64,000 bases of DNA from IMG/VR virus record IMGVR_UViG_3300023296_000874, positions 124,001-188,000 of that record; one strand, 5' to 3'. The notes below the pieces were generated by a model that saw only the letters and a program-made list of their open reading frames with translations, had not been told where the DNA came from and did no database searches. Of this stretch, positions 17,130 to 61,092 are shown piece by piece (the first letter of the stretch is position 1; each line of letters opens with the position of its first letter). Position numbers and translations under genes: made by a program.

Positions 17130-17381
17130 CTATTCGGAAGCCTCGGAGAGGAGCCGGGCCACCCTCTCACGTCCTTCCTGTGTGGCGAGTAGCCGGTTGA
17201 TTGCAACGATCTCAAGGTCCTTGACAGGCTCTTCAGAGGGGTTCCACTTCGCGATGGTCCAGTCGTGGAACCTATCTGCCGTTTCCCCAAAGAAGGGGAG
17301 CAGCGGGTGCGAGATGCAGTTGTGGACGATGTCCCAGAACTTGTCTCGGAAGTAGTAGGCTGCCAAACGGAAATCAATCAT
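17130..17381 (-). CDS. Small hypothetical protein
   Basis: 83 aa, coupled to its neighbours. Confidence 0.6.
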   Translation of the reverse strand: MIDFRLAAYYFRDKFWDIVHNCISHPLLPFFGETADRFHDWTIAKWNPSEEPVKDLEIVAINRLLATQEGRERVARLLSEASE

Positions 17382-37349: not shown

Positions 37350-38399
37350 TCAGTAGTTGATGCTCGCATTCACGAGCAGTCCCTTAGCTACCGCACCGAG
37401 GGGATCCTCGGCGTGGCGTACTTCGGAAATGGGGATGGGGAACTTTGTTCGCTTGGCGAACTCCTCCTTGAAGAAGGGGATGAAGTTCTTGGCCAGCGAG
37501 GTACCACCCGCGATGATCAGCGGAATCGGCTCAGGGGCGTCCGCGTCACCACGGATGAACTCCTTCTCGATGTGGTCCAGAGTGTAGTCGATCAGGGCGC
37601 GGTAGTACACCTGGATTGCTTCGCGGGCACGGGCGTTCTTGAGGTCGCCCTCCATGAAGTCCAGCAGGTCCGCTTCCTTCTCCTTCAGGGCCGCGATCTT
37701 CGATGCGGTGCTGTTCACGGCGCGGGCCGCAGAGGAGTCAATCCAGTCGCCGCCACGGGCGAGGCTGAACTTCATCGTGGTGATGGTGCGGTAGGTCAGA
37801 GCCACGTTCACCATTCCTGCTCCGAAGCTCATGGTGAGGGCGCTGAAGCCGTCCTTGTTCGCCTCGCTGAAGCAGATCGCTGCGGCCTCGTTGAAGGGGC
37901 GCGCGTCGTACCCAAGGTCTCCAACGAGACGCTTGAAGACGCCCTCGTGGAAGATCACGTCCTGGTCGGGGCGGTCAATGGGTGCAGCGGGTACGCTGAA
38001 GAAGCAGATCTCATCCTTGACGGAAGGCTTGCCGAGGAGCTGCTCGATCATGAGGCTGAGTACGCCGTAGCTGTCCAGCTCAGTGTTCGAGATCACGCCG
38101 TCCTGAAGGGGGCGTCGTACCTCACGCTTGAACATGTTGGCGATGTGTAGGGCTTCGTCGCCTACAATCACGATGCTGTCGTCCTTCTCGATGTAGTTGA
38201 CGTCACTCAGCTTGAGGAACTGGGTGTGGCCCGGCTCCAGGTCGAGGAACGCGTCCCGCATCTTCTTGGTCGCTACCTTGCCGTCGGTCGTCTTGCGAGC
38301 CGAAAGGAAGTTCATGGTGCCAACGTCCAGACCTACGCCGGGTGCGGCGGCGGGAGCTGACTTGGGAGGCGTGGCCTCCGGCTTGGTATCTTCAGACAT
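37350..38399 (-). CDS. Actin-superfamily ATPase (MreB/MamK/ParM-like)
   Basis: 349 aa. Phosphate-1 GLDVGTMN, RRPLQDGVI, FSVPA, connect-1 NEAAA, phosphate-2 SFGAGMVN, GGDWID, adenosine IIAGGTS, connect-2 AVAKGLL. Confidence 0.85.
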   Translation of the reverse strand: MSEDTKPEATPPKSAPAAAPGVGLDVGTMNFLSARKTTDGKVATKKMRDAFLDLEPGHTQFLKLSDVNYIEKDDSIVIVGDEALHIANMFKREVRRPLQDGVISNTELDSYGVLSLMIEQLLGKPSVKDEICFFSVPAAPIDRPDQDVIFHEGVFKRLVGDLGYDARPFNEAAAICFSEANKDGFSALTMSFGAGMVNVALTYRTITTMKFSLARGGDWIDSSAARAVNSTASKIAALKEKEADLLDFMEGDLKNARAREAIQVYYRALIDYTLDHIEKEFIRGDADAPEPIPLIIAGGTSLAKNFIPFFKEEFAKRTKFPIPISEVRHAEDPLGAVAKGLLVNASINY

Positions 38400-47383: not shown

Positions 47384-49066
47384 ATGGCCCTCACCCCACT
47401 CGCAAAGAACATCGTCAAGGGAGTTGGCGCGCTCGCCATCCTCGCCGTGACGTGCAGCGTTGGCTTCTACATCTACAGCAACTCCGGCGACGACCCGGCG
47501 ACCACGGTGGCCTCGGCTCCCGGTGAAGCGGCTCCCGCTCAGGCAGAGGATCGCGGCGTCTTCAGCGGCATCTTCGGGGGCGGTGGCAACAGCGGCCCGC
47601 TCGGCTCCGAGGGCAACCCCCTCACCGTGAGCATCGTGAGCTGGCACGGCTACGTTGGCGGGCTGACCGCGAACGGCGGCTTGACCACGCAGCCCGGCAG
47701 CATCAACGCCCGGAACGGCCTGTACGTGAAGTACATCCTCGACGACGGCATCCCGACGATGGCCGAGCGCTTCGAGCCGGGTGACGCGCAGTGCATGTGG
47801 CGCACCGTCGACTTCTGGGCTCAGGAGCAGCCTGCCCTCCGCAGCGTGGGGCTCGACGGCCGCATGGTGATGGTGGTGGACAACTCCCGAGGCGGTGATG
47901 CGATCATCGGACGCAAGGGCACCATCGAGAGTGTGGAAGACCTGGCCGGGAAGACGGTGGCGATCACCGAATTCACGCCCAGCCACATGCTCGGCCTCTA
48001 CGCGGTGGAGCAGAGCTCCCTCAGCGGACGCGCCAAGAGCAGCGTGAACTTCCGGGGCTTCCCCGACAACGCGACGGCACTCGCCGCCTTCCGCGCCGGA
48101 CAGGTTGACGCCCTCATCACCTGGGAGCCCGAGACCAGCATCGCCCTGACCACCGTGGACGGTGCGACCCCCGTGTTCACCACCGCCGAAGCCACCTCGC
48201 TGATCTACGACGGTATCGTGTGCAACACCCGCACCATCGAGACCCACCCCGACGTCATCCAGCGCTTCGTTGGCGGATGGATGGAGGGTGCCACGGCAGC
48301 CCGTGCGAACCCCGGTGCCGGTGCTGACGTGCTGACCGCCAACGAGCCGCTCTTCGCCGCCCTGGTTGCGGACAACGGACGCAACTTCCTGACCGACCGC
48401 GTGTTCGGCGGCATCGTGTGGAGCGACCTCGCGGACAACATCCGAGTGCTGGGCCTCGCCGGAAGCGGTGGCGACCAGATTGCCCGGATCTACAGCGAGA
48501 GCAACGACATCTGGCGGGCGAACACCAACCTGCTCGACGGCATGGCTCAGGTGAGCTCCGGTGACGCCTTCGACGACACCTTCATCCGCGCCCTGATGGA
48601 CACCGCACCCCAGGCTCGAACGGCTGCGGCAGCCCCCGAGTTCACCTTCACCTCCACCGAACGGGCGACCGTGGTGCAGACGGGTGGCTCGGCTCTGACC
48701 AAGCCCATCGCGATCAACTTCGCCACGGGACAGGCCACGCTGAACGCACGAGGCAAGGCGACCATCGAGGCTGAGCTCATCCCCCTGCTCGACGCTACGG
48801 CTGGAAGCTACGTGCGAGTGAGTGGCAACACGGACTCCACGGGTGGTGCGGCGCTCAACACCCGCCTCTCCGGACAGCGTGCCGGAGTGGTGAGCGAGTG
48901 GCTGCAGAGCGAGTGGGAGATTCCGGGTGACCGCCTCGAGGTGGTTGGCAACGGCGAGGACAACCCGATCTGTGACGAGAGCAACCCGACCGGCGACGGC
49001 TACGACGACCTCGAGACCTGCCGGGCGGCGAACCGCACGACCCGCTTCGAGATTCTCTCCCGCTGA
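47384..49066 (+). CDS. ABC substrate-binding protein (NMT1/SsuA/TauA-like) fused to C-terminal OmpA-like domain
   Basis: 560 aa. N-terminal TM anchor. PBP2-type DNSRGGDAII...DLAGKTVA...AFRAGQVDALITWEP. OmpA motifs INFATG, GNTDSTG...N.RLS.QRA and NRTT. Confidence 0.85.
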   Translation: MALTPLAKNIVKGVGALAILAVTCSVGFYIYSNSGDDPATTVASAPGEAAPAQAEDRGVFSGIFGGGGNSGPLGSEGNPLTVSIVSWHGYVGGLTANGGLTTQPGSINARNGLYVKYILDDGIPTMAERFEPGDAQCMWRTVDFWAQEQPALRSVGLDGRMVMVVDNSRGGDAIIGRKGTIESVEDLAGKTVAITEFTPSHMLGLYAVEQSSLSGRAKSSVNFRGFPDNATALAAFRAGQVDALITWEPETSIALTTVDGATPVFTTAEATSLIYDGIVCNTRTIETHPDVIQRFVGGWMEGATAARANPGAGADVLTANEPLFAALVADNGRNFLTDRVFGGIVWSDLADNIRVLGLAGSGGDQIARIYSESNDIWRANTNLLDGMAQVSSGDAFDDTFIRALMDTAPQARTAAAAPEFTFTSTERATVVQTGGSALTKPIAINFATGQATLNARGKATIEAELIPLLDATAGSYVRVSGNTDSTGGAALNTRLSGQRAGVVSEWLQSEWEIPGDRLEVVGNGEDNPICDESNPTGDGYDDLETCRAANRTTRFEILSR

Positions 49067-49099
49067 ACCCTTGCCGGGCGACCGGTACTTGAACCCAAG

Positions 49100-49135
49100 G
49101 CAGGGCCGAGGTGGCATACACCACCTCGGCCCTGC
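49100..49135 (+). promoter_or_regulatory. Perfect 15-bp intercistronic hairpin after the SBP gene
   Basis: gcagggccgaggtgg-cataca-ccacctcggccctgc, with no U-tract. Confidence 0.65.
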
Positions 49136-49150
49136 GCATAGGAGCCTGAG

Positions 49151-49933
49151 ATGAACCCGAACAAGAACATCACCCGCACCATGGGATACGCCCTCGGTGC
49201 CACCAGCATCCTGATGGTGCTGACCCTCTGGAGCGCGCTTGCGGGCTTCGACATGGTGAGCCCCGCCAAGCTCCCCGCACCCTGGAACGTAGCCTCTGCA
49301 TGGTGGGCACTCGCCTTCACCAAGGGACAGCTCGGGGGAGCGATCTTCGCCTCCGTAAGCCGCATCGGCATCGCAGCAGTGCTCATGATCCTCGTTGGCT
49401 TCCCCATGGGCATCCTGATGGGCTCAAGCAAGGCTGTGAATGCCTTCTTCAGCCCGCTCGTTGACCCCTTCCGCTCCGCGCCCATCGTGGCCGTGATCCC
49501 CATCCTCGTGATGTGGTTTGGCATCGGAGAGACGATGAAGGTGGTGTTCTTGTGGCTCGGTGCTGTGGTGTACCTTGTGCCTATGGTGCGAGATGCCATC
49601 CAGGCGGTTGACTCCCGGTGGTTCAAGGCAGCAAAGGACCGGGGCGCATCCGACACCGAAGCGTTGGTGTACGCCGTGCTGCCTATGGCGAAGCCGCGCA
49701 TCGCTGACGCACTCATCACCAGCATCAGCGTGATGTGGACCTACATCACGGTTGCGGAGCTCGTGAACGCTGACAGCGGCATCGGGAAGCTCATCGAGAC
49801 CTACCGAAAGGTGAGCCAGATGGACAGCGTCTTCGCAGGCATCCTGACCATCATGGTGCTGGCTCTGATCTCCTACACGGCGATGGTTGCCTTGCGGAAC
49901 AAGCTCTACCCGGACTACAAGTACGAAGCCTAA
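49151..49933 (+). CDS. ABC transporter permease (NitT/TauT type)
   Basis: 260 aa with about 6 TM segments, RSAPIVAVIPILVMWFGIGE, an EAA-like FKAAKDRGAS, and AELVNADSGIG. Confidence 0.9.
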   Translation: MNPNKNITRTMGYALGATSILMVLTLWSALAGFDMVSPAKLPAPWNVASAWWALAFTKGQLGGAIFASVSRIGIAAVLMILVGFPMGILMGSSKAVNAFFSPLVDPFRSAPIVAVIPILVMWFGIGETMKVVFLWLGAVVYLVPMVRDAIQAVDSRWFKAAKDRGASDTEALVYAVLPMAKPRIADALITSISVMWTYITVAELVNADSGIGKLIETYRKVSQMDSVFAGILTIMVLALISYTAMVALRNKLYPDYKYEA

Positions 49934-49973
49934 GTTCGATACTCTCTGACTTTCAACGGCTTCCACTCGTTAC

Positions 49974-50795
49974 ATGAGAACAGAGCCCAACCACGGGACA
50001 GGTGACATGATTCTGACACTCAACGACATTGTGCAGGAGTACCCCGACCCCTTGAACAAGGGTGCCGTGGTGAGGATTGCTGACGGCGTATGCCTCGAGT
50101 ACCCGGAGCCCAGCATCAACTTCATCATGGGACCCTCCGGCTGTGGCAAGACCACCCTGCTGAGGCTCATGGGAGGCGTGCGACCCTCCAACGTGGTGAC
50201 TCCTACCTCCGGTACGGTGACCATCGACGACAAGCCGTGCATCGGAATGCATCCTGACAGCGTGACCGTCTTCCAGCAGCTCGCCAACTACCCCTTCCTC
50301 ACCGTGGAGGAGAACATCCGCTTCGCCTTCAAGACCGGGGAGTGGGCCGCGCGGGTTGACGCCAAGGAGCAGGACGAGCGAGTGGAGTGGATCCTCGAAG
50401 CAGTGGGCCTCGCCGACCGGAGGGCCAACTACCCTTCGCAGTGCTCGGGTGGGCAGAACCAGCGGATTGCACTCGCCTCGGCGTTGGTGCTCAAGCCACG
50501 CATCCTCCTCATGGACGAGCCCTTCCGTGGCCTCGACCCCAACACCCTGCGCGAAGTGCAGGAACTGCTGGTGCGTATCTGGACCGAGATCCAGTGCCTG
50601 GTGGTGTTTGTTGGACATGACGTTGAAGAGGCGCTCCTGATTGCGGACCGTGTGACAGTGCTGACAACCAAGCCTGCCACCGTCGCTAAGGAGTTCCACA
50701 TCGCAACTCCACGCTCCATGCGGAGCGAGGACTGGCTGGAAACCACGCCGACGCGTGCAACCGAACGTGAGATTCTGCGCTTGATGCGCGGCTGA
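49974..50795 (+). CDS. ABC transporter ATP-binding protein (NitT/TauT type)
   Basis: Walker A GPSGCGKTT, Q-loop VFQQ, signature CSGGQ, Walker B LLMDEP, H-loop GHD. Confidence 0.92.
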   Translation: MRTEPNHGTGDMILTLNDIVQEYPDPLNKGAVVRIADGVCLEYPEPSINFIMGPSGCGKTTLLRLMGGVRPSNVVTPTSGTVTIDDKPCIGMHPDSVTVFQQLANYPFLTVEENIRFAFKTGEWAARVDAKEQDERVEWILEAVGLADRRANYPSQCSGGQNQRIALASALVLKPRILLMDEPFRGLDPNTLREVQELLVRIWTEIQCLVVFVGHDVEEALLIADRVTVLTTKPATVAKEFHIATPRSMRSEDWLETTPTRATEREILRLMRG

Positions 50796-50843: not shown

Positions 50844-51752
50844 ATGAGCCGCTACGACCCCAAAGATGGCGACGTCTCCTACCTGCTTGAGATGCTCGCG
50901 CATCCCGCCAACATCGTCACCGCGAGTGTGGCGGGTTTGGCAGGAGCAGCTTTGCTCGTGACTGCCGGACCACTCGCTGCGGCGCTCCCCTTTGTCGCCC
51001 TTGTTGGTGGGGAGGGCATTGCAGCCCTCTTCGTGCCCAGCAGCGTGGTGTTCAAGGAGTTCGTGAACCGTGGCAAGCGGAGCGACGCTCGGGACAAGGA
51101 GCGCGAGCGTTTGCTCGAAGAGCTCAACAGCCGAGTGCAGGTGTACCGCCACCCTACCGATGAGTGGGGACAGCGACGCGAGGACCGCCGCCCAAGCTCA
51201 GGGCACCTCGACCGGTACAACCGGATTCGGGAGCGCGTGGAGCGCTTCTACGAGCTCAGTGCTGAGGGAGGATCCGCCCTCACCTACACGGATGCGGAGC
51301 GGCTTGACGACCTCAGCGTCGACTTCCTGCGACTGTGGCTCGTGACCTACACGCTTCACGAGCGTGGACAGAGCATCGACGTGGGCGACCTCACGAAGCG
51401 GGTGCGAAGCCTGAACGAGCAGATCAAGGACGCCAATGTGCTGGAGCAGCGCAAGCTCGCCTCGGCCCGAGATGGACTCCAGAAGGTGCTCGACCGGCGC
51501 TCAAGCTTCTCCTCTCAGCGGGACTCTGCCGAGGCCCGGATGCTGACCATGGCGGACGGCATCGAAGAGATGTACTCCCGCACGTTGGCGAGCCCCGGTG
51601 AAGCCAGCAGCTTCCTCGACGACCAGCTCGGACGGCTGGAAGTGGAGGAACGCCTCGGCGCAGAGTTGGACATCGAGCTCGCGGAGATGGGCCTCGGCAA
51701 GACGCTCCACCGCGACCCCCGGATGGATCTGCTCATGGACGGCAACTCGTGA
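50844..51752 (+). CDS. Two-TM membrane protein with long helical/coiled-coil tail (XpaC-like architecture)
   Basis: 302 aa. TM hairpin at residues ~20-65, then coiled coil. Ends in RMDLLMDGNS. Confidence 0.65.
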   Translation: MSRYDPKDGDVSYLLEMLAHPANIVTASVAGLAGAALLVTAGPLAAALPFVALVGGEGIAALFVPSSVVFKEFVNRGKRSDARDKERERLLEELNSRVQVYRHPTDEWGQRREDRRPSSGHLDRYNRIRERVERFYELSAEGGSALTYTDAERLDDLSVDFLRLWLVTYTLHERGQSIDVGDLTKRVRSLNEQIKDANVLEQRKLASARDGLQKVLDRRSSFSSQRDSAEARMLTMADGIEEMYSRTLASPGEASSFLDDQLGRLEVEERLGAELDIELAEMGLGKTLHRDPRMDLLMDGNS

Positions 51753-51910
51753 GCGGTTTCGAACTGTGCATCGTGGCCGGAATAGTGTGGTACGGAGCTG
51801 TAGCCGCACACGGCCTCCGCGTGTACCGCATTGCTCGGGAGGACGGCCGCTCCTACTCTTTCACATGGAACGTCCTCACCGGACCTTCCGTCATCTACCA
51901 GGATTGAACC

Positions 51911-52807
51911 ATGCCCCAGATCACCGTTGACGACCTCCAGACCCGATACGACTTCCCCTCCTGCGACGGGCGCGTCAAGGACACCATCGAAGCGGCTATG
52001 GACGCCGGACCTGCAAGCTTCCTGCGCTTCCTCTATCGGTACGCGGAGTGGAATGGCTTCTTCGGCTCCGGCGTTGCGACGTTGGCGGGCAAGGTGGGGC
52101 GCTCCCGTGGGCTCTTCATGGACCCCGAGGAGACGATCACTCCGCTCGCTGACCGTGGTGTGCTCGTTGCCGCCTACGTGTTCAACGCGGCACGGGACGA
52201 GTTCGACGACAGCGGCACCGAGGCCCTCGACACTCACCGCTGCCTCGCACAGGCCATGCTCAAGGGCTCCGTTGAGTACCTGACGCCAGGTTCCTTCGTG
52301 ACCCGCGCTGAGGATGGCACGGCGGTTCAGGCTCCCTTCGGCTGGGCCGACGGTGAGTTGGACGAGCTGCTCGACATCCCGATCTGGCTGCAGGGCCTCT
52401 GCGATCAGGTGGCTGTGGGGTACGGGAACGGCTCGCCGGACGACCGACCCAGCATCTTCCGCGCCATGGGCTACCACATGGGCTCTGAGGTGCTCGCCGC
52501 CAAGGAGTTCACGCAGATCGACATGAGCTTCCGCGCCCGGATGATGGACATGGTGGAGTACCTCGAGCGCAACGAGGTGACCTTCAACAGCCAGAGCTAC
52601 CAGTGCTACTACTGGATCCGCATTCACAGTGACCTCGGTGGCGCTGTTGAGAGCGCTCACTTCGAGGATGCGCTCCGCGCCATCCGCTACGCCCTCGGCT
52701 TCGTGCCGGAGGAGGACCGGGACGCCCTGCGGTACCAGGCTCTGCTGGGATTTGACGACTTCGCCGCCGACCATGCGGGCTTCTTCCGCATGGTGAACAC
52801 AGCCTGA
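51911..52807 (+). CDS. Heme-oxygenase-like diiron oxidase (HDO/CADD-like) superfamily protein
   Basis: 298 aa, helical. Ligand-like motifs RDEF...DTH, GSEVLA and WIRIH...VESAH. Confidence 0.6.
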   Translation: MPQITVDDLQTRYDFPSCDGRVKDTIEAAMDAGPASFLRFLYRYAEWNGFFGSGVATLAGKVGRSRGLFMDPEETITPLADRGVLVAAYVFNAARDEFDDSGTEALDTHRCLAQAMLKGSVEYLTPGSFVTRAEDGTAVQAPFGWADGELDELLDIPIWLQGLCDQVAVGYGNGSPDDRPSIFRAMGYHMGSEVLAAKEFTQIDMSFRARMMDMVEYLERNEVTFNSQSYQCYYWIRIHSDLGGAVESAHFEDALRAIRYALGFVPEEDRDALRYQALLGFDDFAADHAGFFRMVNTA

Positions 52808-52816
52808 GAGGACCCC

Positions 52817-53266
52817 ATGATCATCAAGCCTGATATCTGCGAGCTCCTGCCCATCGGCTTCCGGCTGAGGTTGCAAGGTGGCGAGACCAAGCCTCAGCGA
52901 GACCAAGCCCTCAAGGCGGGTCTCGCGCACGCCAGGGGGCAGGGAGAGTTTCCGCTCGACCTGACCACGACGGCGATGGTTTGGTACAAGAAGGACCAGC
53001 ACAACGCGCGCTCGTGCAAGTACATCCTGCTTGCCCACCAGGGCGGCGTGAAGTGGGTGATGACCATCGCCCATGTGCATCAGCGCAAGACCGGAGTGAT
53101 TGGTGCGGAGCTACGCGCCTTCCACCCCCAGGAAGTACCCTGCCGACGGAAGCAGATCCCCTCCAGTGCCGTCCCCGTGGATGTGATGGATGCCGTGGGC
53201 CTGATCTTCAACATCATCAAGCCGACCGCAGCAGAAGCGCGGATGGACATCCTCTTCGACGATTAG
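52817..53266 (+). CDS. Hypothetical protein ending RMDILFDD
   Basis: 149 aa with GAGG RBS. Confidence 0.75.
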   Translation: MIIKPDICELLPIGFRLRLQGGETKPQRDQALKAGLAHARGQGEFPLDLTTTAMVWYKKDQHNARSCKYILLAHQGGVKWVMTIAHVHQRKTGVIGAELRAFHPQEVPCRRKQIPSSAVPVDVMDAVGLIFNIIKPTAAEARMDILFDD

Positions 53267-53274
53267 GAAGTGAC

Positions 53275-53550
53275 ATGGACATCCTCGTAGTGACCCTGAC
53301 CGAAGCCGGACACGAGGTCTTCAGTGCAAGCCCCGGCGAGCAGTTCTTGGCGGTGGGCTGGAACGGCACCACCTTCGAGAGTCTGCTGGACATCAAGACT
53401 CACAAGCTCCGTGCGGGCACCGTGGGAGCAGCTCGCGTCAATGTGGTGGGAAGGCTGGTTGAGATCCCTGCCACTCGGGAAGAAGTAGGACTGCCTCCAC
53501 TCCCTGAGCCCAAGCTGAAGGGTCGGATGGGTATCCTGTTCGACGATTAG
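53275..53550 (+). CDS. Hypothetical protein ending RMGILFDD
   Basis: 91 aa from ATG 53275 (AGGA RBS). Confidence 0.7.
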   Translation: MDILVVTLTEAGHEVFSASPGEQFLAVGWNGTTFESLLDIKTHKLRAGTVGAARVNVVGRLVEIPATREEVGLPPLPEPKLKGRMGILFDD

Positions 53551-53601
53551 CCTCTGAGTTCTGAGTGCCTCACCTCGTTATCCCTATGTAACGGAGGCAC
53601 C

Positions 53602-53958
53602 ATGAAGCTCGCAGAACTCAAAGCCGCAGCCCACGCACTGACCAATGTGGAAGCACACCTCGGAAGAGGCTGGGACTACATCGGTAGTGCCGGTGGATCT
53701 GAGTACACCTTCGGACTCGACCTTGAGGCCGACGGTGGAGAGTTCCCTGAGGCTCCCGGTGGCAAGTTTGAGCTCGTGCGTGCCAACGGCATCGTGAGTG
53801 CTTGGACCATCCGTTGGTACGCGGAAGGCGAGCACCTGTACACCGAATACGAGGGACGTGGCGACTCCCCCACCAAAGCCTACTACAGCCTCCTCTACAC
53901 CTTCGAAGACTCCGACAGCGCAGAGCTCAACGCATGGGCCGCTGCGGCTGACGAGTAG
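53602..53958 (+). CDS. Hypothetical protein
   Basis: 118 aa with GGAGG RBS. Confidence 0.75.
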   Translation: MKLAELKAAAHALTNVEAHLGRGWDYIGSAGGSEYTFGLDLEADGGEFPEAPGGKFELVRANGIVSAWTIRWYAEGEHLYTEYEGRGDSPTKAYYSLLYTFEDSDSAELNAWAAAADE

Positions 53959-53981
53959 ACCATCCACCAGTAGGAAAGGGA

Positions 53982-54500
53982 ATGCCCTCAGACGACAAGT
54001 GTACCAAACAGAACCACAACCTCTCCCTCTCTATGGAAGGGCTCCTGATGATGGCTCGAATGCTCCGCGCACTCGGGTTCACCGGGAAGGAATGGAGAGC
54101 CTCCAACGTCAGCCTGGACCGTGCCTTCTCAACTGAGAAGTTGAGCCGATCATGCAACGCGAAAGCGCTCGAACATGACAAGGAAGGACGGTACCCACGT
54201 CCCGTGACGCTCGACCTACGTGTTCTCTACCAAGAGAGCCGCAAGGAAGCCTCTGAAGGCATCACGGTCTCCTGGTTTTTCTCCTGCACAGTGTGGGGTC
54301 AGGATCTTTCGGGCGGTGCCCGTCTACCCAAGGTGGTAGTTCCTCTCGACGCTGATGTTGCCACGGCTGACATGATCATCCTGAAGGGCGCGCAAGCTGC
54401 CTACGCTGATCTCCTCGGAGCGATCCAGAAGAAGACAGCCAAGATGCTGAGTGACGCTGGAGGTGAGCTCTCCTACGAAGCCTCCCCTGAAGTTGAGTAG
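53982..54500 (+). CDS. Hypothetical protein
   Basis: 172 aa; the start may be at a downstream ATG. Confidence 0.65.
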   Translation: MPSDDKCTKQNHNLSLSMEGLLMMARMLRALGFTGKEWRASNVSLDRAFSTEKLSRSCNAKALEHDKEGRYPRPVTLDLRVLYQESRKEASEGITVSWFFSCTVWGQDLSGGARLPKVVVPLDADVATADMIILKGAQAAYADLLGAIQKKTAKMLSDAGGELSYEASPEVE

Positions 54501-55069
54501 CGGGCGTAGGGGCTGAAGGATCATCTGCTGAAGCGGCTGCTGTATAAGCATTTGCTGTAGCACTGGTACCGTTGGTACTGGCATAGGTATTCGGATCAAG
54601 GGCTGTCGGAGGTATAGTTTTAGACCCAGGGAGCTTCACTGTATTGACTCTGTATCTGAGTCTCTCTATTGAGTAGAGAGTAGATAGAGAGTCAGTCATG
54701 CTACTTCTGGATGGCAGACACCGGAGCTTCGTTGAGCACGCTTCGGTGTGGAACATCTGCCCTCCCTGATGGAGTTCACCTTTCCGCCATGAGCGGAGTT
54801 GGACAATTCTTTTAGGCTCGCGGAACCCATAGACGAGACCTCTGCTTCCACAGCAGATAAAGACATCACGCTTCGATTTACTCAGGCGTTGGGGCGTTTG
54901 ATTATGCTCGATCAAATGCGACAGGCTTCCTGCTCGTAGGTGGTGCTTCGATGAAGTAGTACACGCGGATTATCGGCGGATAGCGAATTCATTCTATAGT
55001 TCTTTCCCTGGAGGCTTGACTCCTCATGGCAGTTGCGTCCTACAAGCATCCACTTGAACAGGATGAAGC

Positions 55070-56005
55070 ATGGCCCGCTGGATTGGACGGAACGTACTCA
55101 GCATCGACGACATAGACCAAGAGGACATCGTTGAGCTGTTCAAGAGGGCGGACGGCCTTCAGGGTGCCTGGCCTCACGTCTTTGAGACCTTGAAGTTCGC
55201 TCGGGTGACCAACCTGTTCTACGAGCCAAGCACCCGGACCGCCAAGAGCTTCGAGGCCGCTGCTCAGATGCTCGGTGCTGACGTGCTGAACATCACGGAG
55301 CCCGCCTACTCTTCAATCAGTAAGGGCGAGAGCCTGGAGGACACGGTCCGCACGCTTGCCTGCTACAGCAACCTCATCGTACTGAGGCACCCCGACGTCG
55401 GCGCGGCGGCACGAGCGGCTAAGGTGGCCGGGGTACCTGTGGTGAACGCCGGAGACGGGGTTGGAGAGCACCCGACACAAGCACTCCTGGACTTGTACTG
55501 CATCTACAGGGAGCTCGGCACCTTGGATGGCCTCACCGTTGGGCTTGTTGGTGATCTGAAGCACGGACGCACCGTCCACTCTCTTGCGAAGCTGCTCTCC
55601 AGATACGACACCAAGTTCGTGCTCGTGAGTCCTCCCGCAATGGGAATGCCTGAGGGCTACTGCGAAGGTGAGTGCATGACCCTTGAGGAAGCCGTGCCGC
55701 AGGTGGACGTCCTCTACGTCACCCGCGTCCAGAAGGAACGCCTCAGTGCTGAAGACCTCACCGCCCACGGGTTGAGCGGTGGTTACGTCATCACCCCTGA
55801 GACCATGAGCCGTGCGAAGGCTTCGATGGCTCTGATGCATCCCTTCCCCCGCGTCGGTGAGATCCTCCCTTCAGTGGACAGCGATCCTCGCGCCGCGTAC
55901 TTCAGGCAGATTGAGGGAGGCTTGTGGGTTCGCGCCGCTTTGCTATCCTTGGTGCTCGGATCGGTCAACCAAGAAGGCTACCTGCCTCTCGCGAAGAACC
56001 GATAG
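55070..56005 (+). CDS. pyrB: Aspartate carbamoyltransferase catalytic subunit
   Basis: FYEPSTRT, KGESLEDT, RHP, NAGDGVGEHPTQALLD, GDLKHGRTVHS, YVTRVQKER, MHPFPR. Confidence 0.95.
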   Translation: MARWIGRNVLSIDDIDQEDIVELFKRADGLQGAWPHVFETLKFARVTNLFYEPSTRTAKSFEAAAQMLGADVLNITEPAYSSISKGESLEDTVRTLACYSNLIVLRHPDVGAAARAAKVAGVPVVNAGDGVGEHPTQALLDLYCIYRELGTLDGLTVGLVGDLKHGRTVHSLAKLLSRYDTKFVLVSPPAMGMPEGYCEGECMTLEEAVPQVDVLYVTRVQKERLSAEDLTAHGLSGGYVITPETMSRAKASMALMHPFPRVGEILPSVDSDPRAAYFRQIEGGLWVRAALLSLVLGSVNQEGYLPLAKNR

Positions 56006-56047
56006 AAACCGTCTGAGTTTCCCACCCCTCGGCTCGTTGTACGGGTA

Positions 56048-56614
56048 ATGGAGGCAGACAGCATGTTCGGATCGACACTTCAGATGGTGCGCCACCCCGA
56101 CCCCCGACTGGAGCAGGTTTCTGCAACAGTTGAAGAGGGTGAGTTTGGTGCCGACATGCTGACCCGCGCCCAGGCCATGAACCACCTCCGCAAGATCGAG
56201 GGCGGCATTGGTATCGCGGGTGTGCAGGTTGGCGACATGCGCCGCATCCTGCTCGCGGTTGTGGGTGAGAAGCCCGCACATCAGGCCAGCCGCGACGCTA
56301 CCTTCTTCGCGAACCCCGTGATCACCGCTCATGGTGACACCGTACCCTCCGGCTTCAAGGAGGGATGCCTCAGCTACCCCAAGCTCAAGGTGAACATCCA
56401 CCGCTACGCCTGGATCGTGCTTGAGTGGCGCGACTTTGACGGCAGCCAGCACACCCGCCGCTTTGAGGGGATGGACGCCATCGTGCTTCAGCACGAGATG
56501 GACCACCTTGACGGCAAGACCCTTCTTCAGCAGGCCTCATCGACGGCGAAGCGCAAGTTCGCTACCGGAAAGCTCCCACGCCCCAAGAAGACGCGTAGAA
56601 GCTCCCGCCGCTAA
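56048..56614 (+). CDS. def: Peptide deformylase
   Basis: GIGIAGVQVG, EGCLS and QHEMDHLDG motifs, with a basic C-terminal tail. Confidence 0.95.
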   Translation: MEADSMFGSTLQMVRHPDPRLEQVSATVEEGEFGADMLTRAQAMNHLRKIEGGIGIAGVQVGDMRRILLAVVGEKPAHQASRDATFFANPVITAHGDTVPSGFKEGCLSYPKLKVNIHRYAWIVLEWRDFDGSQHTRRFEGMDAIVLQHEMDHLDGKTLLQQASSTAKRKFATGKLPRPKKTRRSSRR

Positions 56615-56738
56615 GTAGCCGACAACTCGGCACTTTCATGAAAGTTTAGTTCGTATTGCGATTTACTCTGAGTATCTCGCGGATGGTTTCGTTTTCCTTA
56701 TGTAACCCCCAAGGGGAAGTACAGAAGGAACCAAAACC

Positions 56739-57737
56739 ATGCGACTCTATCCCGCCCTCATGATTGCCCTACTCACCCTCACCGTGGGCTGTATGCCCGC
56801 ACAGGGGATCCTCGAAATCGAAGAGGACCCCACCGAAGACTGCTGCCCTGACGAAGATGACGACGTTGTGGTGGACGATGACGACGACTCCGGCGACACC
56901 GGTGATGACGACGACAGCGCCTGCGTTGACTGCGGCGACGATGATGACCACGGCGACAGCGACGTGGACAACGACGAGGACGGATACTTCGACGACGTTG
57001 ACTGCAACGACTACGACGACACCGTGTACCCCGGCGCGGAGGAGACTCCCTACGATGGCATCGACAGCAACTGCAACGGCCTCGAGGACGACTACGACTT
57101 CGACGGTGACGGCGAGGTGGCCCTGGGCTACGGCGGCGCGGACTGCAATGACCTGGATGCGGACGTGAACCCCGACGCGGACGAGGTTTGGTACGACGGC
57201 GTCGACCAGAACTGCGACGGGTGGAGCGACTACGACCAGGACGGCGATGGCTTCGACAGCGAGAGCTACGGCGGCGATGACTGCAACGACATCAACGGCG
57301 TGATCTTCCCCGACGCTCCTGACGTGTGGGACGGAGTGGACAGCGATTGTGATGGAGACGCTGACTACCTGGAGATGGAGGTGGCTGCACCCACCACCGT
57401 AGCCTCTACCACGACCATCGAGATTGAGGACGGCGACCCCAGCGGCCACTTCATCGAAATGTGGAACACCGTGATCGACGAAGAGGGTGGCGTTGACGAG
57501 AGCTACTACGGCTACTACGAGGTGGACGTGGACGGTACCTGCCTGAGCCTCTTGGCGGGTGACGAAGGCTGCGGGACGATGGCATCAGCAGGCGACCTCC
57601 TGATGACCTGGCTTGCTACGAACAGCACCCTGATCCTCTGGAACAGCACGGAGACCGAGTGCGTGGCCTGGGGAGCGTACCTCGACCTCCACGACGCGGC
57701 TGGACTCTGTACCGTGATCTCCCCCGACGCCCTGTAG
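56739..57737 (+). CDS. Acidic lipoprotein with three MopE-related putative metal-binding repeats
   Basis: Lipobox LTVGC, poly-Asp linker, then three copies of D.DGDG...DCND....P.A.E..YDG.D.NCDG. Confidence 0.85.
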   Translation: MRLYPALMIALLTLTVGCMPAQGILEIEEDPTEDCCPDEDDDVVVDDDDDSGDTGDDDDSACVDCGDDDDHGDSDVDNDEDGYFDDVDCNDYDDTVYPGAEETPYDGIDSNCNGLEDDYDFDGDGEVALGYGGADCNDLDADVNPDADEVWYDGVDQNCDGWSDYDQDGDGFDSESYGGDDCNDINGVIFPDAPDVWDGVDSDCDGDADYLEMEVAAPTTVASTTTIEIEDGDPSGHFIEMWNTVIDEEGGVDESYYGYYEVDVDGTCLSLLAGDEGCGTMASAGDLLMTWLATNSTLILWNSTETECVAWGAYLDLHDAAGLCTVISPDAL

Positions 57738-57969
57738 GAACCCACCCCAGATCCTCCTGTACTTCCCCGGTGCCCCTGCTCTTCGCAGGGGCATTCGAGG
57801 TCTTCGTCTTGTTTGACGGATACGTGCCTGAAAGCGCCCTGACCACAAGGGTTTAGACCACCGCTATCCAGTTCGAAGCTTCGCAACTTCTGGCCGGACT
57901 TGTTGTTCAATGACATACGCCTCACCTGGGGCTAAAACGCGACAGTGAACCAGAAAACGGAGCTAATCC

Positions 57970-60435
57970 ATGGACAGCCGATTTGCCACTCGTAACTTCG
58001 GCGGCGCATCTCGCCGCTACTTCTTCGTCGAGGCTTTGGCCTGCGGTTCGACCGACACGGTCGACACCGATACGAACCCCTCCCATCACATCGTCGTGCT
58101 GGACGCCTCCGGCTCCATGTACCGCGACATGGCCTCGATGAAGGCCACCGTGCGCAAGCTCTGGACCCTCGAGGAGTTCCAGAACAGCAACCAGCTCGTG
58201 AGCCTCCTCAGCTACTCTTCGGAGGGCGACCTCCGCACCCACTTCAGCCGCGTGCGCGTAGCTGACGTGATGGCAGCGGACAGCAGCTACCTCAAGGAGA
58301 TCGACAACCTCCGCGTGCGTGGCCTCACCTGCATGAGCCAGGCCCTCGAGGGTGCCCGCCAGCTCTGCCAGACCGGCGAGCTGACCTGCATCACCCTCCA
58401 CTCCGACGGCTACGCCAACCACCGCTCCCCGACTCAGGAGCGCCGCACGATCGACCGCATCATTGGCGACTTCGCCGGTATGCAGGACGTGTACGTCAAC
58501 ACCATCGCTCACCGCGCGTGGAGCGACTTCGGACTGCTCAACAGCATCTCCAACTCCCTGAGTGGCAAGTGCGTGCAGGCGGGTGACATCCGCGCGGTGT
58601 TCGATGCACTCCACGACACGACCACGCTGCTCAGCGGCCAGCGCACCCCGGCAATCGCCCAGCAGATCGGCAACGCCGACTACCAGGTGTTCGTCAGCGT
58701 GGATGACGGCCGAGTGAACGGCACCGACGGTGACCTGCAGGTGACCGGGCTGAGCAACGACGGCGACAAGACCATCTACCGCTACCGCAGCGTCACCGAG
58801 GCCGAGTACAACAGTTCTTCTCTGCCCGAGTGTGGAGAGGGCAACGACGACCTGACCCCGGTGTACGCCTACAGCCGTGCGATGCTGGCCGAGGGTAGCC
58901 TCAACACCGCCAAGTACGCGCTGGTGAGCACCCGCAACGGCACGCTCCTCGACGAGTACAGCCGCGCCCTGACCAACGAGGAGATCGCGGCCTTCAGCAA
59001 CGGCCTCGAGAACGTGCTCTTCAACGACCCCGACCACACCTTCAGCGATGGCTACGGAGTGGACACCTCGGTTGCCCCCGTGCTGAGCATCCTCGGCGTG
59101 CTGGACACTTGGAGCCGGGCACTGCGCCTCGACACCAAGGCTCTGAGCGCTGGCTACAAGCGGCGTGGCCTCAAGCGCGTCGCTGGCAAGCGTCTGGATG
59201 ACGGCTCGCTCGAGCTGCCCTGGATCGACTCCGTGGAGACGGACACCGATGACTTCGCCCAGGTTGGCGCGGTTGAGGTGAACCGCAACACGGCGACGGC
59301 CAACATCCGCGTCGAGCGTTCGATGCAGATCGTTGAGCGGGAGAGCGGCAACGCGATCCTCGACATCAGCGGTGTGGACGTCAGCGACCTGAAGAGCTAC
59401 CGGAACTACACCCTCGTGGGTGACGGCAGCTTGAACGTGAGCGAGATCGTGGTGCAGATCAGCGACAAGCGTGCCTTCCGCGAGTTGGTTGCGCTGGGCG
59501 TGCTGACGGGTGACTACAACCCGACTGCCTCCTACACCATCAGCCTCGCCGGGCGTCCGCTGGTTGCCTTCGACCAGACCTACGCTTCCATCGACGGCGT
59601 GTTCGACACCTTGGCTCAGTACAAGGCGCTCGGCAGCATCCTGACCGCACTGACCGCGACGACCTCCGAGGCGTTGACGGGCGAGCAGGTGACCGAGCTG
59701 AAGCGTCACTACCTGAGCCCGGCGCTCTACCTCAGCCTCCCGACCACCTACGAGTACACGGAGCTCGACGATGCGATGGCGGACGGCAGCGTCGACACCC
59801 GCCTCTCCTACAAGGTGGACATCGGCAACACCGACATCGTGAGCACCGGCAAGCTGAAGAGCGCCAACGCCTACCTGGTGCGCCGCTTCACCGTGGCTCT
59901 GGACAACGTGGCGCAGAAGAAGGGCACCTGGGCGATGTGGTGGGACGACAACTACAGCGTCGGACTCAAGAAGCTGACCGCGCGTACCAAGCTGGACGCC
60001 ACCGACGACATCCTGATGCCGATCTTCGAGGGCTTCCTCGGCTTCGGCAACTCGGCGGCGGTGACCGACATCCTGGTTGCTGCGGGTGCGGATGCGGCCT
60101 TGGTTGCCTCCATCGAAGCTTCGCTGGTGAAGACCAACGAGCCCGAGGAGCAGGTTGAGGCCTTCAACGCTGCCAAGCGTTGCGTGAAGGCGGCTGAGAA
60201 GGCGCTCTTCGCGGACCGCGTGAGCCCCGTGGCCTTCTACATCGGCGCAACCGGCCTCGTGCCGGATGAGTTCGATGCTCCGGCCATGACCGCTGACGAC
60301 CTCGCGGGCAGCTTCCCCAACATCAAGCTCTCCAAGGGCGAGAAGGAGGGGACGTTCTTCCAGGTGGGCAGCAGCCTCATCAGCGTGTTCATCAAGGAAG
60401 AGCGCTTCAGCACGGGGAACCAGGCCACCGCCTGA
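57970..60435 (+). CDS. von Willebrand factor A (vWA) domain protein
   Basis: 821 aa. MIDAS VVLDASGSM, then GLTCMSQAL and LHSDG. The long C-terminal region is unassigned. Confidence 0.85.
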   Translation: MDSRFATRNFGGASRRYFFVEALACGSTDTVDTDTNPSHHIVVLDASGSMYRDMASMKATVRKLWTLEEFQNSNQLVSLLSYSSEGDLRTHFSRVRVADVMAADSSYLKEIDNLRVRGLTCMSQALEGARQLCQTGELTCITLHSDGYANHRSPTQERRTIDRIIGDFAGMQDVYVNTIAHRAWSDFGLLNSISNSLSGKCVQAGDIRAVFDALHDTTTLLSGQRTPAIAQQIGNADYQVFVSVDDGRVNGTDGDLQVTGLSNDGDKTIYRYRSVTEAEYNSSSLPECGEGNDDLTPVYAYSRAMLAEGSLNTAKYALVSTRNGTLLDEYSRALTNEEIAAFSNGLENVLFNDPDHTFSDGYGVDTSVAPVLSILGVLDTWSRALRLDTKALSAGYKRRGLKRVAGKRLDDGSLELPWIDSVETDTDDFAQVGAVEVNRNTATANIRVERSMQIVERESGNAILDISGVDVSDLKSYRNYTLVGDGSLNVSEIVVQISDKRAFRELVALGVLTGDYNPTASYTISLAGRPLVAFDQTYASIDGVFDTLAQYKALGSILTALTATTSEALTGEQVTELKRHYLSPALYLSLPTTYEYTELDDAMADGSVDTRLSYKVDIGNTDIVSTGKLKSANAYLVRRFTVALDNVAQKKGTWAMWWDDNYSVGLKKLTARTKLDATDDILMPIFEGFLGFGNSAAVTDILVAAGADAALVASIEASLVKTNEPEEQVEAFNAAKRCVKAAEKALFADRVSPVAFYIGATGLVPDEFDAPAMTADDLAGSFPNIKLSKGEKEGTFFQVGSSLISVFIKEERFSTGNQATA

Positions 60436-60453
60436 TCTCCTGAGTTGATGCGG

Positions 60454-60489
60454 ACGACGCCCGAGTGGGGAGACCTGCTCGGGCGTCGT
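60454..60489 (+). terminator. 12-bp hairpin after vWA gene
   Basis: acgacgcccgag...ctcgggcgtcgt. Confidence 0.55.
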
Positions 60490-60591
60490 TGGTCCTGACC
60501 CGTCCATGACTCAAGTCCGACGTCTACACACTTCTGGGCCGCTCTTGTGGTTCTATGGCTGTACCTGAACAACTTGCACCCCGGAACCCTT

Positions 60592-61092
60592 ATGCGCGAA
60601 TTGACCATCTACGTCACGGATGACGGGAGGCGGTACGACGACAAGCGTGCCGCTCAAGAGCATGAGGCAGTCGATGCCGCCATGCTCCCTCTCTTGGCGA
60701 TGCTCCCCCCGAAGTACGACATCCCCTACGCGCAGTACATCGACCACGGGCCGTCCGCCTACGTCCGGGGACAGGAAGCTCGCCTTGCCGCCTACACCTA
60801 CCTGCGAGACAACCCGCCGCAGTACAAGAGCATGGACCACGCCCGCATCCCAGAGGTGATCCAGGCGCTCGTTGATGGCAAGGACGTGAACGACGGGTGG
60901 ATCGAACGCTGCATCCTCTACGAGAGCACCCCGTGGGCGAACATGCGTCAGATCTTCAGCCGCCTTGCTTGCATGGACGCGGGTGGGCGGGAGTACGACC
61001 AGCAGTACCACAAGAACAACAGCGAGAAGACCACCGAGCACATCGTCCCCGGTTACAGTCGCAGGCTTGACCTGTTGATGGAGGAAGCATGA
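60592..61092 (+). CDS. Hypothetical protein ending RRLDLLMEEA
   Basis: 166 aa from ATG 60592, with an ATGA overlap to the next gene. Confidence 0.75.
   Translation: MRELTIYVTDDGRRYDDKRAAQEHEAVDAAMLPLLAMLPPKYDIPYAQYIDHGPSAYVRGQEARLAAYTYLRDNPPQYKSMDHARIPEVIQALVDGKDVNDGWIERCILYESTPWANMRQIFSRLACMDAGGREYDQQYHKNNSEKTTEHIVPGYSRRLDLLMEEA

Follow-up and report, generated by a model that had tools for sequence, protein, structure and literature searches.

About 25 otherwise unrelated proteins of an uncultured huge phage carry the same eight-residue tail, of the R-L-D-L-L-F-D-D type, and this tail is kept in diverged relatives. It looks like a plug for one shared partner, which is still unidentified. 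The 64,000-nucleotide stretch that we analysed (the window) lies in a 257,533-bp contig of this phage. Genome-wide, about 19 proteins ended in [S/D/N]-R-[LM]-x-[ILM]-L-[FM]-[DE]-[DE], three more carried the motif at the N-terminus and about three carried an internal copy near the C-terminus, out of roughly 296 proteins. The initial annotation had listed four unrelated plus-strand proteins sharing the tail and a similar peptide near the N-terminus of a fifth. All five peptides were found where they had been placed, so the observation holds, and it is much larger than was first seen. The features are listed in the table.

Positions of the motif copies and of the other genes considered (w, window coordinates; g, genome coordinates)
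Feature	Position	Strand	Protein	Remarks
C-terminal tail RMDLLMDGNS	w 51720-51749	+	302 aa, w 50844-51752	two-helix membrane hairpin followed by a long coiled-coil region
C-terminal tail RMDILFDD	w 53240-53263	+	149 aa, w 52817-53266	
C-terminal tail RMGILFDD	w 53524-53547	+	91 aa, w 53275-53550	preceded by the linker LPPLPEPKLKG; same 91-aa product in independent public gene calls
C-terminal tail RLDLLMEEA	w 61063-61089	+	w 60592 (or 60547)-61092	immediately downstream of the vWA gene; 166 aa in public gene calls
N-terminal copy KLDLLFDD	w 27088-27111	+	172 aa, w 27061-27579	residues 10-17
N-terminal copy MIDRLALLMDDDDD	g 53239-53748	-		outside the window
N-terminal copy MAHPKLELLLG	g 80427-81251	-		outside the window
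Paralogue pair of carriers	g 1665-1910 and 1907-2161			
vWA protein	w 57970-60435		821 aa	
Actin-like gene	w 37350-38399			67% identical to that in L078
Cdc48-like AAA protein	g 17365-19659		764 aa	
Ycf46/SpoVK/Vps4-type AAA protein	g 81331-82917		528 aa	
AAA protein	g 88142-89035		297 aa	
PolA, family A polymerase	g 85006-87594			

To test whether the tail is enriched at protein ends, the first of two conditions named in advance as capable of overturning the idea, we compared the real proteins with several controls. First, the strict pattern R-[ML]-[DG]-[IL]-L-[FM]-[DE] occurred only five times in all six frames of the genome, and four of these lay within 3 residues of a stop. In addition, the class pattern R-x-x-[ILMV]-[ILM]-[FLMI]-[DEN] near the C-terminus hit 13 of 293 proteins, whereas residue shuffles gave 0.24 on average (maximum 3 in 2000). 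When the four seed proteins were left out, 9 were observed against 0.22 expected (P about 3e-12). These counts rest on our own crude gene calls. Interior 12-residue windows of the same proteins gave about 1.1 under a related pattern, R-[LMIVF]-x-x-[LMI]-[LMIFW], which also hit 13 C-termini, and reversed sequences gave 0 under the original pattern. Finally, in a six-frame control, the tail occurred in 13 of 293 called ORFs and in 3 of 2370 uncalled ORFs, and those three are probably genes missed by our caller. Terminal enrichment is therefore strong.

We next asked whether a DNA repeat or paralogy could cause the pattern. Codons differed between copies, as the initial annotation had noted, and a DNA repeat was rejected. 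All-against-all BLAST of 20 carriers found only one paralogue pair, every other match being the motif itself; paralogy was rejected as well, and the description of the four proteins as unrelated is correct. Pfam and PHROGs searches of the carriers gave nothing except a bL12-CTD-like domain in one of them. The context was tabulated over 20 aligned copies, with R as position 1. Position 1 was R in 17, K in 1, Q in 1 and I in 1; position 5 was L in 19/20; and D/E was found at position 7 in 18/20 and at position 8 in 15/20. The residue just before the motif was S, D, N or T (an N-cap-type residue) in 13/20. Proline made up 14% of the 12 preceding residues, against 4.7% in the proteome. One of the tails ends in PGYSRRLDLLMEEA. 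In the one carrier model made, of the 149-aa protein, the body (residues 8-134) was confident and the tail (138-147) was a low-confidence helix detached from it. The 149-aa body had no clear structural match (Foldseek E >= 0.34, VIA Z <= 4.6, atlas TM < 0.45).

The second condition set beforehand was conservation of the tail in homologues, and here too the idea survived, in three families, two of them in the replisome operon. The 149-aa family has 7 representatives plus the orthologue in L070 (L070 and L086 are contigs of a groundwater phage), with bodies 20-45% identical. Its members end in EARLDLLFED, EARFDLFFEDDE, ELRFKILFCDD, EERLSLMWDLL, SHRMMMFTDE and degenerate forms. An 88-aa replisome-operon family shows NRIDLLFKDD, NRFSILMDG and SKLDLLMNPD, with bodies 27-38% identical. 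The protein just downstream of the 528-aa AAA gene keeps an N-terminal copy (HPKLELLLG, HPKLSLLLED and RHKKLEMLMG). Linkers differed between orthologues. These relatives range from 39% to 65% G+C, so the partner is either phage-encoded or universally conserved. However, the L070 orthologue of the 302-aa carrier (42% identical) lacks the tail, indicating that the tail is dispensable for at least that body, and two distant relatives (485 kb and 395 kb) showed no enrichment. A 103-aa family ending in RLRVVFADV, RLEQVFDDI and LILEVFEDA was not counted, because the residues before the motif are conserved too and it may be part of the fold.

Further searches for carriers and relatives yielded nothing new. 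A degenerate DNA pattern for R-x-D-[ILM]-L-F-[DE]-D-stop gave 5 hits in IMG/VR, all of them chance (short ORFs or wrong frames). A search for related loci in viral contigs with the vWA protein and with its closest homologue found nothing, and a metagenome scan with the 149-aa family returned only contigs already known; the ENA and JGI relatives were not searched as whole records. A word search with the 302-aa carrier found only itself although the 42% identical orthologue exists, so that blank means little.

Given these results, the explanation we favour, at about even odds or slightly better, is that the tail is a short linear docking motif that sits at a protein terminus behind a flexible, proline-rich linker. 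In this view, the motif is disordered when free and on binding would become a short helix or strand, inserting its hydrophobic residues into a groove on one common cytoplasmic partner, while the Arg and the trailing acidic residues would pair with opposite charges around that groove. About 25 unrelated accessory proteins, including two membrane proteins, would thus be tethered to the same hub, and new clients would arise easily because only eight residues must evolve. Our analysis demonstrates the motif itself, its terminal enrichment, its independence from protein body and DNA sequence, its linker context, its conservation in orthologues and its gain or loss between them. That it binds anything, that all copies bind the same partner, and which partner that is are inferences. 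The interpretation in the initial annotation, a docking motif comparable to the β-clamp motif or the SSB tail that recruits diverse early proteins to one hub, or else a degron, is thus partly supported. The comparison with clamp-binding tails is apt. The early character of the carriers, the choice of hub and the distinction between tethering and marking for an unfoldase or protease were either not supported or not examined; the carriers lie on both strands and in several modules, including the replisome operon.

The most likely kind of hub is a replisome-associated toolbelt protein of the sliding-clamp type, which would be the host β clamp because no phage clamp is detectable, but we hold this identity as doubtful. 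In sequence and architecture the motif is closest to clamp-binding tails. T4 gp43 ends in ASLDFLFG, gp55 in PSLDFLYEAND and gp33 in NTLDFLL; these tails, which bind the gp45 clamp, are described as interchangeable 'hydrophobic and acidic C-termini' on divergent flexible linkers (PMC2988020). Our motif shares the L-D-Φ-L-Φ core, the acidic end, the terminal position on otherwise unrelated proteins of one phage and the flexible linker. Position 1 is R rather than S/T and position 4 is L/I/M rather than F, and this mixture leaves membership in the T4 pattern undecided. The bacterial motif (QL[SD]LF; Qφx[LM]x[FL]) has five or six residues, with an aliphatic residue at position 2, a free position 3 and hydrophobic residues at positions 4 and 6. 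It is followed by acidic residues or the C-terminus, and it occurs in disordered N-termini (Hda), C-termini (Pol II, Pol IV, the alpha subunit) or loops, many clients sharing one pocket (PMC11139829). The terminal or internal location and the acidic flank of our copies agree with this. The conserved Gln is replaced by Arg in most copies, although Gln is called important but not essential (PMC11139829). Position 2 is L or M in 13/20; position 4 is L or M in 13/20 and I in 6; and position 6 is F or L in 10/20 and M in 9, Met being as common as Phe. This partial fit to the hydrophobic positions does not settle the matter either way, and binding to the clamp pocket was not assayed, the host being unknown.

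Several findings argue against a clamp in particular. Position 1 is Arg, not the Gln of bacterial motifs or the Ser/Thr of T4. PolA, the replicative polymerase, ends in YKAVEWGL without a tail, as do its orthologues. No PF02916, PF00705, PF00712 or PF02768 match (DnaN, gp45 or PCNA domains) was found in the contig, none for PF00712 or PF02916 was found in two relatives, and no clamp loader was detectable. The contig is, however, estimated to be 81% complete, and the PF02916 control did not include a T4-like genome. Ten unassigned replication-module proteins gave no clamp hit, and the 266-aa neighbour of the 88-aa carrier is a membrane protein, not a clamp. Finally, twenty-five clients, including multi-pass membrane proteins and N-terminal copies, is far more than any known clamp toolbelt in a phage; in T4 there are three carriers.

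The main rival, which we consider unlikely, is that the tail is a recognition tag or adaptor plug for one of the phage's own classic AAA ATPases, the 528-aa or the 764-aa protein. Carriers would be delivered for unfolding or remodelling, or would act as adaptors and membrane receptors, in the way that MIM motifs dock on the Vps4 MIT domain and SHP, VIM and VBM motifs dock on the p97 N-domain. Both ATPases have a large uncharacterised N-terminal region. The 528-aa gene sits inside the replisome operon and is 59-69% identical between G000, L086 and L087 (a 478-kb scaffold), all of which carry tails, and tblastn found no match to it in the two tail-less genomes. Ten of the 20 copies contain R-L-x-x-L, the core of MIM1 ((D/E)xxLxxRLxxL(K/R)), a C-terminal helical motif of ESCRT-III proteins. 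Terminal position is what unfoldase tags need, and the membrane-anchored and soluble carriers mirror the range of p97 adaptors. However, the upstream Leu and trailing basic residue of MIM1 are absent, our copies ending in acidic residues. Pfam found only the AAA domain in both ATPases, with no MIT or Cdc48_N domain; their N-terminal folds were not modelled and no complex with the tail was predicted. In addition, the 764-aa protein has a 40% identical homologue in the tail-less 395-kb phage and the 528-aa family is widespread in phages and bacteria, so neither protein is specific to tail-bearing genomes.

A degron, timing the destruction of accessory proteins by a host protease (ClpXP, ClpAP, Lon or FtsH), was the alternative offered in the initial annotation, and we regard it as improbable. 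The motif is terminal and exposed, it sits on many small accessory proteins, and hydrophobic residues are typical of degrons. An ssrA/ClpX-type degron has a non-polar extreme C-terminus at a fixed distance from the carboxylate, and our tails do not fit this. The ends are acidic (DD, ED, EEA, DDD), which blocks ClpX-type C-terminal recognition, as in ssrA-DD, and FtsH and Tsp prefer non-polar ends. The distance to the terminus varies from 0 to 7 residues in the terminal copies, internal copies lie 16-42 residues from the end, and N-terminal copies also exist. Furthermore, the motif is almost unchanged across the 39% to 65% G+C range of phages, which presumably infect very different hosts. The acidic ends weaken the degron reading for the classical host proteases, but it is not excluded for the phage's own AAA ATPases. 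The SspB adaptor tail (the XB peptide, which docks on the ClpX N-domain) has the same architecture of body, flexible linker and short C-terminal docking peptide. Its sequence (LRVVK, basic) is unrelated, and it is a single adaptor rather than a proteome-wide set.

We also considered whether the tail is a ligand of the conserved vWA protein, one of its acidic residues coordinating the metal at the MIDAS site as in integrin or CbbO-type recognition, with the 297-aa AAA protein perhaps acting as a MoxR/CobS-like motor. The MIDAS signature D45-x-S47-G48-S49...T120...D146 was invariant across 60 homologues, and the model was confident, with a vWA domain plus a β-sandwich core like ArnB and the Sec24 trunk. 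The 149-aa family lies just upstream of the vWA gene in G000, L070, L078 (a 245-kb Tara contig) and L080, and four of the window's carriers flank it. The synteny may only reflect common descent, because many genes around it are collinear, and the vWA protein is equally conserved in relatives without tails (W01, L072-L075). The one complex prediction, of the vWA protein (60-row alignment) with Mg and the last 32 residues of the 181-aa carrier, gave ipSAE values of 0.00 and 0.02, which is evidence neither for nor against binding. We consider this reading very unlikely.

A sorting or self-association signal, loading proteins into the capsid as encapsulin cargo peptides do, or targeting them to a compartment, a condensate or the actin-like filament, is similarly improbable. 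Many small proteins of unknown function share the peptide, a highly conserved actin-like gene is present, and ParR-type and encapsulin-type terminal peptides are precedents; this reading was not tested directly. By our reading of the sequences, two carriers are integral, multi-pass membrane proteins with cytoplasmic tails, which argues against capsid loading, and this signal was set aside. In the 302-aa carrier, for example, basic residues follow the second transmembrane helix, so its tail should be cytoplasmic. In addition, three carrier families sit in the replisome operon rather than the structural module, and the actin-like gene is also present in tail-less W01.

Motif-and-hub networks are well known in eukaryotes and their viruses, but in bacteria and phages they are largely limited to a few cases, such as the β clamp, the SSB tail and T4 gp45. 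Here, one peptide marks about 25 proteins of unknown function in a single uncultured phage and is kept across relatives with very different base composition. This links a large share of the phage's unannotated genes to one shared, testable interaction, and naming the hub could assign a pathway to two dozen orphan genes. If the hub is the host clamp, this phage hijacks the toolbelt on an unusual scale. A more speculative and unlikely possibility is that a lineage of huge phages has evolved its own proteome-wide address tag, spread to new clients by de novo evolution, that would plug about 8% of the phage's proteins, soluble and membrane-bound, into a phage-encoded hub. The most interesting candidate would be a Cdc48/Ycf46-like AAA machine with the carriers as substrate adaptors and membrane receptors. 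That would be a new kind of viral adaptor system, a bacterial-world counterpart of the p97 or Vps4 adaptor networks.

The window (bases 124001-188000) belongs to a single 257,533-bp contig of 59% G+C, which is recorded in IMG/VR as a linear virus sequence. The contig is incomplete, with a CheckV completeness of 81%. The same phage occurs in about a dozen public assemblies. Its only relative among GenBank phages is the unannotated 485-kb 'uncultured phage' LR745208.1, which shares the structural and replication core with this genome. The genome encodes a family A DNA polymerase, a DnaB-like helicase, a type IA topoisomerase, an SNF2 helicase, PhoH, an SPFH protein, many metabolic genes and an 821-aa vWA protein. 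In LR745208.1, the family A polymerase matches in four pieces over 4.8 kb, suggesting inteins or introns in the gene. The phage also has three AAA-family ATPases. Two of them (764 aa and 528 aa) are Cdc48/VCP-like by PDB sequence search (E 3e-29 and 4e-42) and have large unassigned N-terminal regions. The third (297 aa) is small and has an extremely acidic C-terminus, ending in DDAEDDEYYEEDE. It is therefore a huge phage from an uncultured lineage, and its host is unknown.

The initial annotation described a shared C-terminal tail on four proteins and a similar KLDLLFDD near one N-terminus, and this observation held, since all five peptides were found exactly where it had placed them. Its strict pattern occurs five times in all six frames of the genome, and four of these occurrences are within three residues of a stop codon. 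To examine the whole proteome, we made a gene call based on codon usage, which yielded 292 genes covering 92% of the contig, and one gene was added by hand. This gene call is our own and crude. Reading all C-termini showed that the initial annotation had captured only part of the set. In total, about 25 of roughly 296 proteins carry the motif at the C-terminus, at the N-terminus or 16-42 residues from the C-terminus.

Coordinates of the motif copies and of other features (genome coordinate = window coordinate plus 124000)
Feature	Coordinates	Strand	Sequence or locus
C-terminal copy	genome 1665-1910	+	RLTMLMDDEADG
C-terminal copy	genome 1907-2161	+	RLTMLMDDEAEEAGS
C-terminal copy	genome 4887-5624	-	RVEILID
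C-terminal copy	genome 6968-7693	-	IWDILFDVDDD
C-terminal copy	genome 7677-8435	-	RLGMLMNDDAG
C-terminal copy	genome 13274-13993	-	RLDMIMDGE
C-terminal copy (145-aa carrier with bL12-like segment)	genome 31811-32248	-	RTTLLFDEG; locus L002:12811-13248
C-terminal copy	genome 35551-35847	-	QPFVLFEDD
C-terminal copy	genome 43296-43691	-	RIELLLEA
C-terminal copy	genome 44491-45000	-	RMTLLMEG
C-terminal copy	genome 45092-45322	-	RLELLMEV
C-terminal copy	genome 50324-50581	-	RLALLLED
C-terminal copy	genome 89840-90106	-	RIDLLFKDD
C-terminal copies of the four window genes	window		
C-terminal copy	genome 191291-191578	+	RLALLFDDE
C-terminal copy	genome 194003-194251	+	RAEILFED
N-terminal copy	genome 53239-53748	-	MIDRLALLMDDDDD
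N-terminal copy	genome 80427-81251	-	MAHPKLELLLG
N-terminal copy	window 27061-27579		KLDLLFDD
Copy 16-42 residues from the C-terminus	genome 36233-36871	-	
Copy 16-42 residues from the C-terminus	genome 243389-244054	-	
Copy 16-42 residues from the C-terminus (second copy in this gene)	genome 4887-5624	-	
Three AAA-family ATPases	genome 17365-19659, 81331-82917 and 88142-89035	-, - and +	loci L001 and L005
Two paralogous LPG_synthase_C genes	genome 68117-70759	-	locus L004:11120-13759
Actin-like protein	window 37350-38399	-	
ABC importer cassette	window 47384-50795	+	
Three auxiliary genes	window 55070-57737	+	
vWA protein	window 57970-60435	+	
Shadow ORF of the vWA gene	window 57922-60507	opposite to the vWA gene	
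Polymerase pieces in LR745208.1	LR745208.1 285080-289891		
Six small genes in a 65% G+C relative		-	locus L072:11894-15119
Four tandem genes in the 395-kb phage	G001 259590-261230	+	loci L025-L026

We next tested whether the tails exceed chance, since a lack of terminal enrichment over shuffled controls had been set out beforehand as an outcome that would count against the motif. The four seed tails were generalised to the class pattern R-x-x-[ILMV]-[ILM]-[FLMI]-[DEN]. First, thirteen proteins carry this pattern at the C-terminus, whereas 2000 within-protein shuffles gave 0.24 on average and at most 3. When the four seed proteins were left out, 9 were observed against 0.22 expected from the interior rate (P about 3e-12). 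Reversed sequences gave none. In addition, a related pattern, R-[LMIVF]-x-x-[LMI]-[LMIFW], hit 13 C-termini against about 1.1 for random interior 12-residue windows. Finally, among all stop-to-stop ORFs of 50 codons or more, the tail ends 13 of 293 called genes and 3 of 2370 others (Fisher P about 1e-10), and those three look like genes missed by our gene call. The codons differ from copy to copy, as the initial annotation had stated, indicating that this is not a DNA repeat. Its description of the carriers as unrelated was also examined. All-against-all BLAST of the carriers found one paralogue pair only, and all other matches were the motif itself.

The anatomy of the motif was tabulated over 20 aligned copies, with the conserved Arg as position 1. 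Position 1 is R in 17, position 2 is L or M in 13, position 3 is D or E in 11, position 4 is L, I or M in 19, position 5 is L in 19, position 6 is M or F in 17, position 7 is D or E in 18, and position 8 is D or E in 15. The residue before the Arg is S, D, N or T in 13 of 20, and these are typical helix N-cap residues. Proline makes up 14% of the twelve preceding residues, against 4.7% in the proteome. In an AlphaFold model of the 149-aa carrier, built on an 8-sequence family alignment, residues 8-134 form a confident alpha-plus-beta body, and the tail (residues 138-147) forms a helix of low confidence, with pLDDT near 52. A classical host degron is disfavoured by the acidic ends, the variable spacing to the terminus and the N-terminal copies.

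The carriers are small (median 159 aa against 209 for the proteome), lie on both strands and are almost all without a Pfam or PHROG family. One carrier (145 aa) contains a ribosomal bL12 C-terminal-domain-like segment (Pfam E 3.6e-6) but lacks the bL12 N-terminal domain. It is a translation-factor-binding fold on a docking tail. Two carriers are membrane proteins. By our reading of the sequences, basic residues follow the last transmembrane helix in both, which places the tails in the cytoplasm. The partner must therefore be cytoplasmic, and a capsid-loading signal is unlikely.

Conservation of the tails in homologues had likewise been named in advance as a test, and we therefore examined relatives of the phage, of which only about 20 kb of each close one was read. 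Two distant relatives were read whole, LR745208.1 and a 395-kb IMG/VR contig (G001) that shares the 764-aa AAA gene, and neither showed any enrichment. In G001, four tandem genes (96-165 aa) end in a near-identical peptide, LVSEEVLEDIVLNHLPGF (one copy has D for the second E), and two other small proteins there end LEVLFDLN(QF/C). Closer relatives were reached through the vWA protein and the 528-aa AAA protein. The groundwater contig L070 has 39% G+C, a vWA protein 56% identical to that of this phage, and is collinear with the window. Its 144-aa orthologue of the 149-aa carrier is 33% identical and ends EARFDLFFEDDE, and a 95-aa protein there ends TRMQILFEDV. In contrast, its orthologue of the 302-aa carrier (42% identical) has no tail. 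A profile search of 1.84 billion representative proteins found seven representatives of the 149-aa family. They end EARMDILFDD, EARLDLLFED, ELRFKILFCDD, EERLSLMWDLL and SHRMMMFTDE, plus the degenerate YRLRLLRL and AMRLMFML. Four other contigs, whose vWA proteins are 48-52% identical, showed no tails in 61 kb. A relative of 65% G+C (L072) carries six small genes that all begin M-[KR]-x-R-[HNS]-G-F-V-S-N-S-S-S, an N-terminal signature shared by otherwise short, diverse proteins.

The vWA protein was considered as a possible partner of the tail. It has an invariant, perfect MIDAS site and more than 430 homologues (40-56% identical) on contigs up to 650 kb. Its model is confident (pLDDT 88.7), and the N-terminal half resembles the vWA-plus-beta-sandwich core of ArnB and the Sec24 trunk, although its function is unknown. 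The 861-codon ORF on the opposite strand is a shadow of this gene. The vWA protein lies beside the conserved 149-aa family in four lineages. However, this synteny may be simple inheritance, and the protein is just as conserved where tails are absent. The single complex prediction that we made, of the vWA protein plus Mg plus a 32-residue tail, returned no answer, with a score of 0.02, which by the rule of the method is no evidence either way. Other genes of the window are also conserved in relatives. A complete ABC importer cassette, comprising an NMT1-type binding protein fused to an OmpA-like domain (560 aa), a permease (260 aa) and an ATPase (273 aa), is conserved and collinear in L070. An actin-like protein (349 aa; public annotation of its homologue gives Volactin/MreB_Mbl) lies inside the structural gene block. 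It is 67% identical to that of the Tara phage L078 and 48% identical to that of LR745208.1, which makes it one of the most conserved genes of the clade. Three auxiliary genes of the window sit in a row, encoding aspartate carbamoyltransferase (311 aa), peptide deformylase (188 aa) and a predicted lipoprotein (332 aa) that has Asp-rich repeats and is listed as Cu-binding_MopE in public annotation.

The replisome operon was compared across this phage, L086 (39% G+C) and L087 (a 478-kb scaffold, 55% G+C). The 88-aa carrier keeps its tail (NRIDLLFKDD, NRFSILMDG, SKLDLLMNPD) with bodies 27-38% identical. The protein just downstream of the 528-aa AAA gene keeps an N-terminal copy (HPKLELLLG, HPKLSLLLED, RHKKLEMLMG) with bodies 24-31% identical. 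Elsewhere in this genome, two adjacent paralogous genes have the C-terminal domain of phosphatidylglycerol lysyltransferase (LPG_synthase_C), a domain that recurs in L086 and L087. They lie near a class II aminoacyl-tRNA-synthetase-like gene, identified only by its C-terminal sequence, which has a 48% match in G001. The main rival explanation is that the tail is a plug or tag for one of the classic AAA ATPases of the phage. Such machines are recruited through short motifs, namely MIM on the Vps4 MIT domain, and SHP, VIM and VBM on the p97 N-domain. The 528-aa AAA gene lies in the replisome operon next to a motif-bearing gene, and we found no match to it in the two tail-less genomes. However, its family is widespread, and the 764-aa AAA protein also occurs in a tail-less phage.

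These comparisons indicate that the tail is under selection in at least three families, across phages of very different base composition. It can be gained or lost, and it has multiplied in the lineage of this phage. A partner that serves phages of 39-65% G+C must be either phage-encoded or a universally conserved host protein. Terminal position at either end, a flexible linker, eight conserved residues on unrelated bodies, conservation that outlasts the body, and easy gain and loss are, taken together, the marks of a short linear motif that docks on a partner. The interpretation in the initial annotation, a docking motif for one hub or else a degron, was thus partly supported. The motif, its enrichment and its conservation were observed directly, whereas docking is inferred from them and no binding was shown. 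We therefore regard a docking motif for one common hub as about as likely as not, or slightly more likely.

The nearest known motifs are the clamp-binding tails. In NC_000866, T4 gp43 ends EEKASLDFLFG, gp55 ends DDSPSLDFLYEAND and gp33 ends EKTNTLDFLL. A review of T4 late transcription describes them as highly similar, interchangeable 'hydrophobic and acidic C-termini' on divergent linkers (PMC2988020). The bacterial beta-clamp motif is defined as Qφx[LM][FL] or Qφx[LM]x[FL], is often followed by acidic residues or the free C-terminus, and is found at N-termini (Hda), C-termini or in loops (PMC11139829). We read the present motif as fitting the hexameric form at every position but the first, although Ile at position 4 and Met at position 6 leave this agreement undecided. 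Two carrier families lie in the replisome operon. However, Arg replaces Gln or Ser at position 1 almost without exception, the polymerase has no tail, and no clamp gene was detectable in this contig or in two relatives. Furthermore, twenty-five clients, including membrane proteins, is unlike any known phage toolbelt. We therefore regard a sliding clamp, presumably that of the host, as a possible but unlikely hub.

A motif-and-hub toolbelt is a known arrangement. What differs here is the scale (about 8% of a phage proteome), the Arg-first variant of the motif, the membrane-bound clients and the absence of a recognisable clamp, and we consider the system of real interest. Naming the hub could tie two dozen orphan genes of this phage to one pathway.
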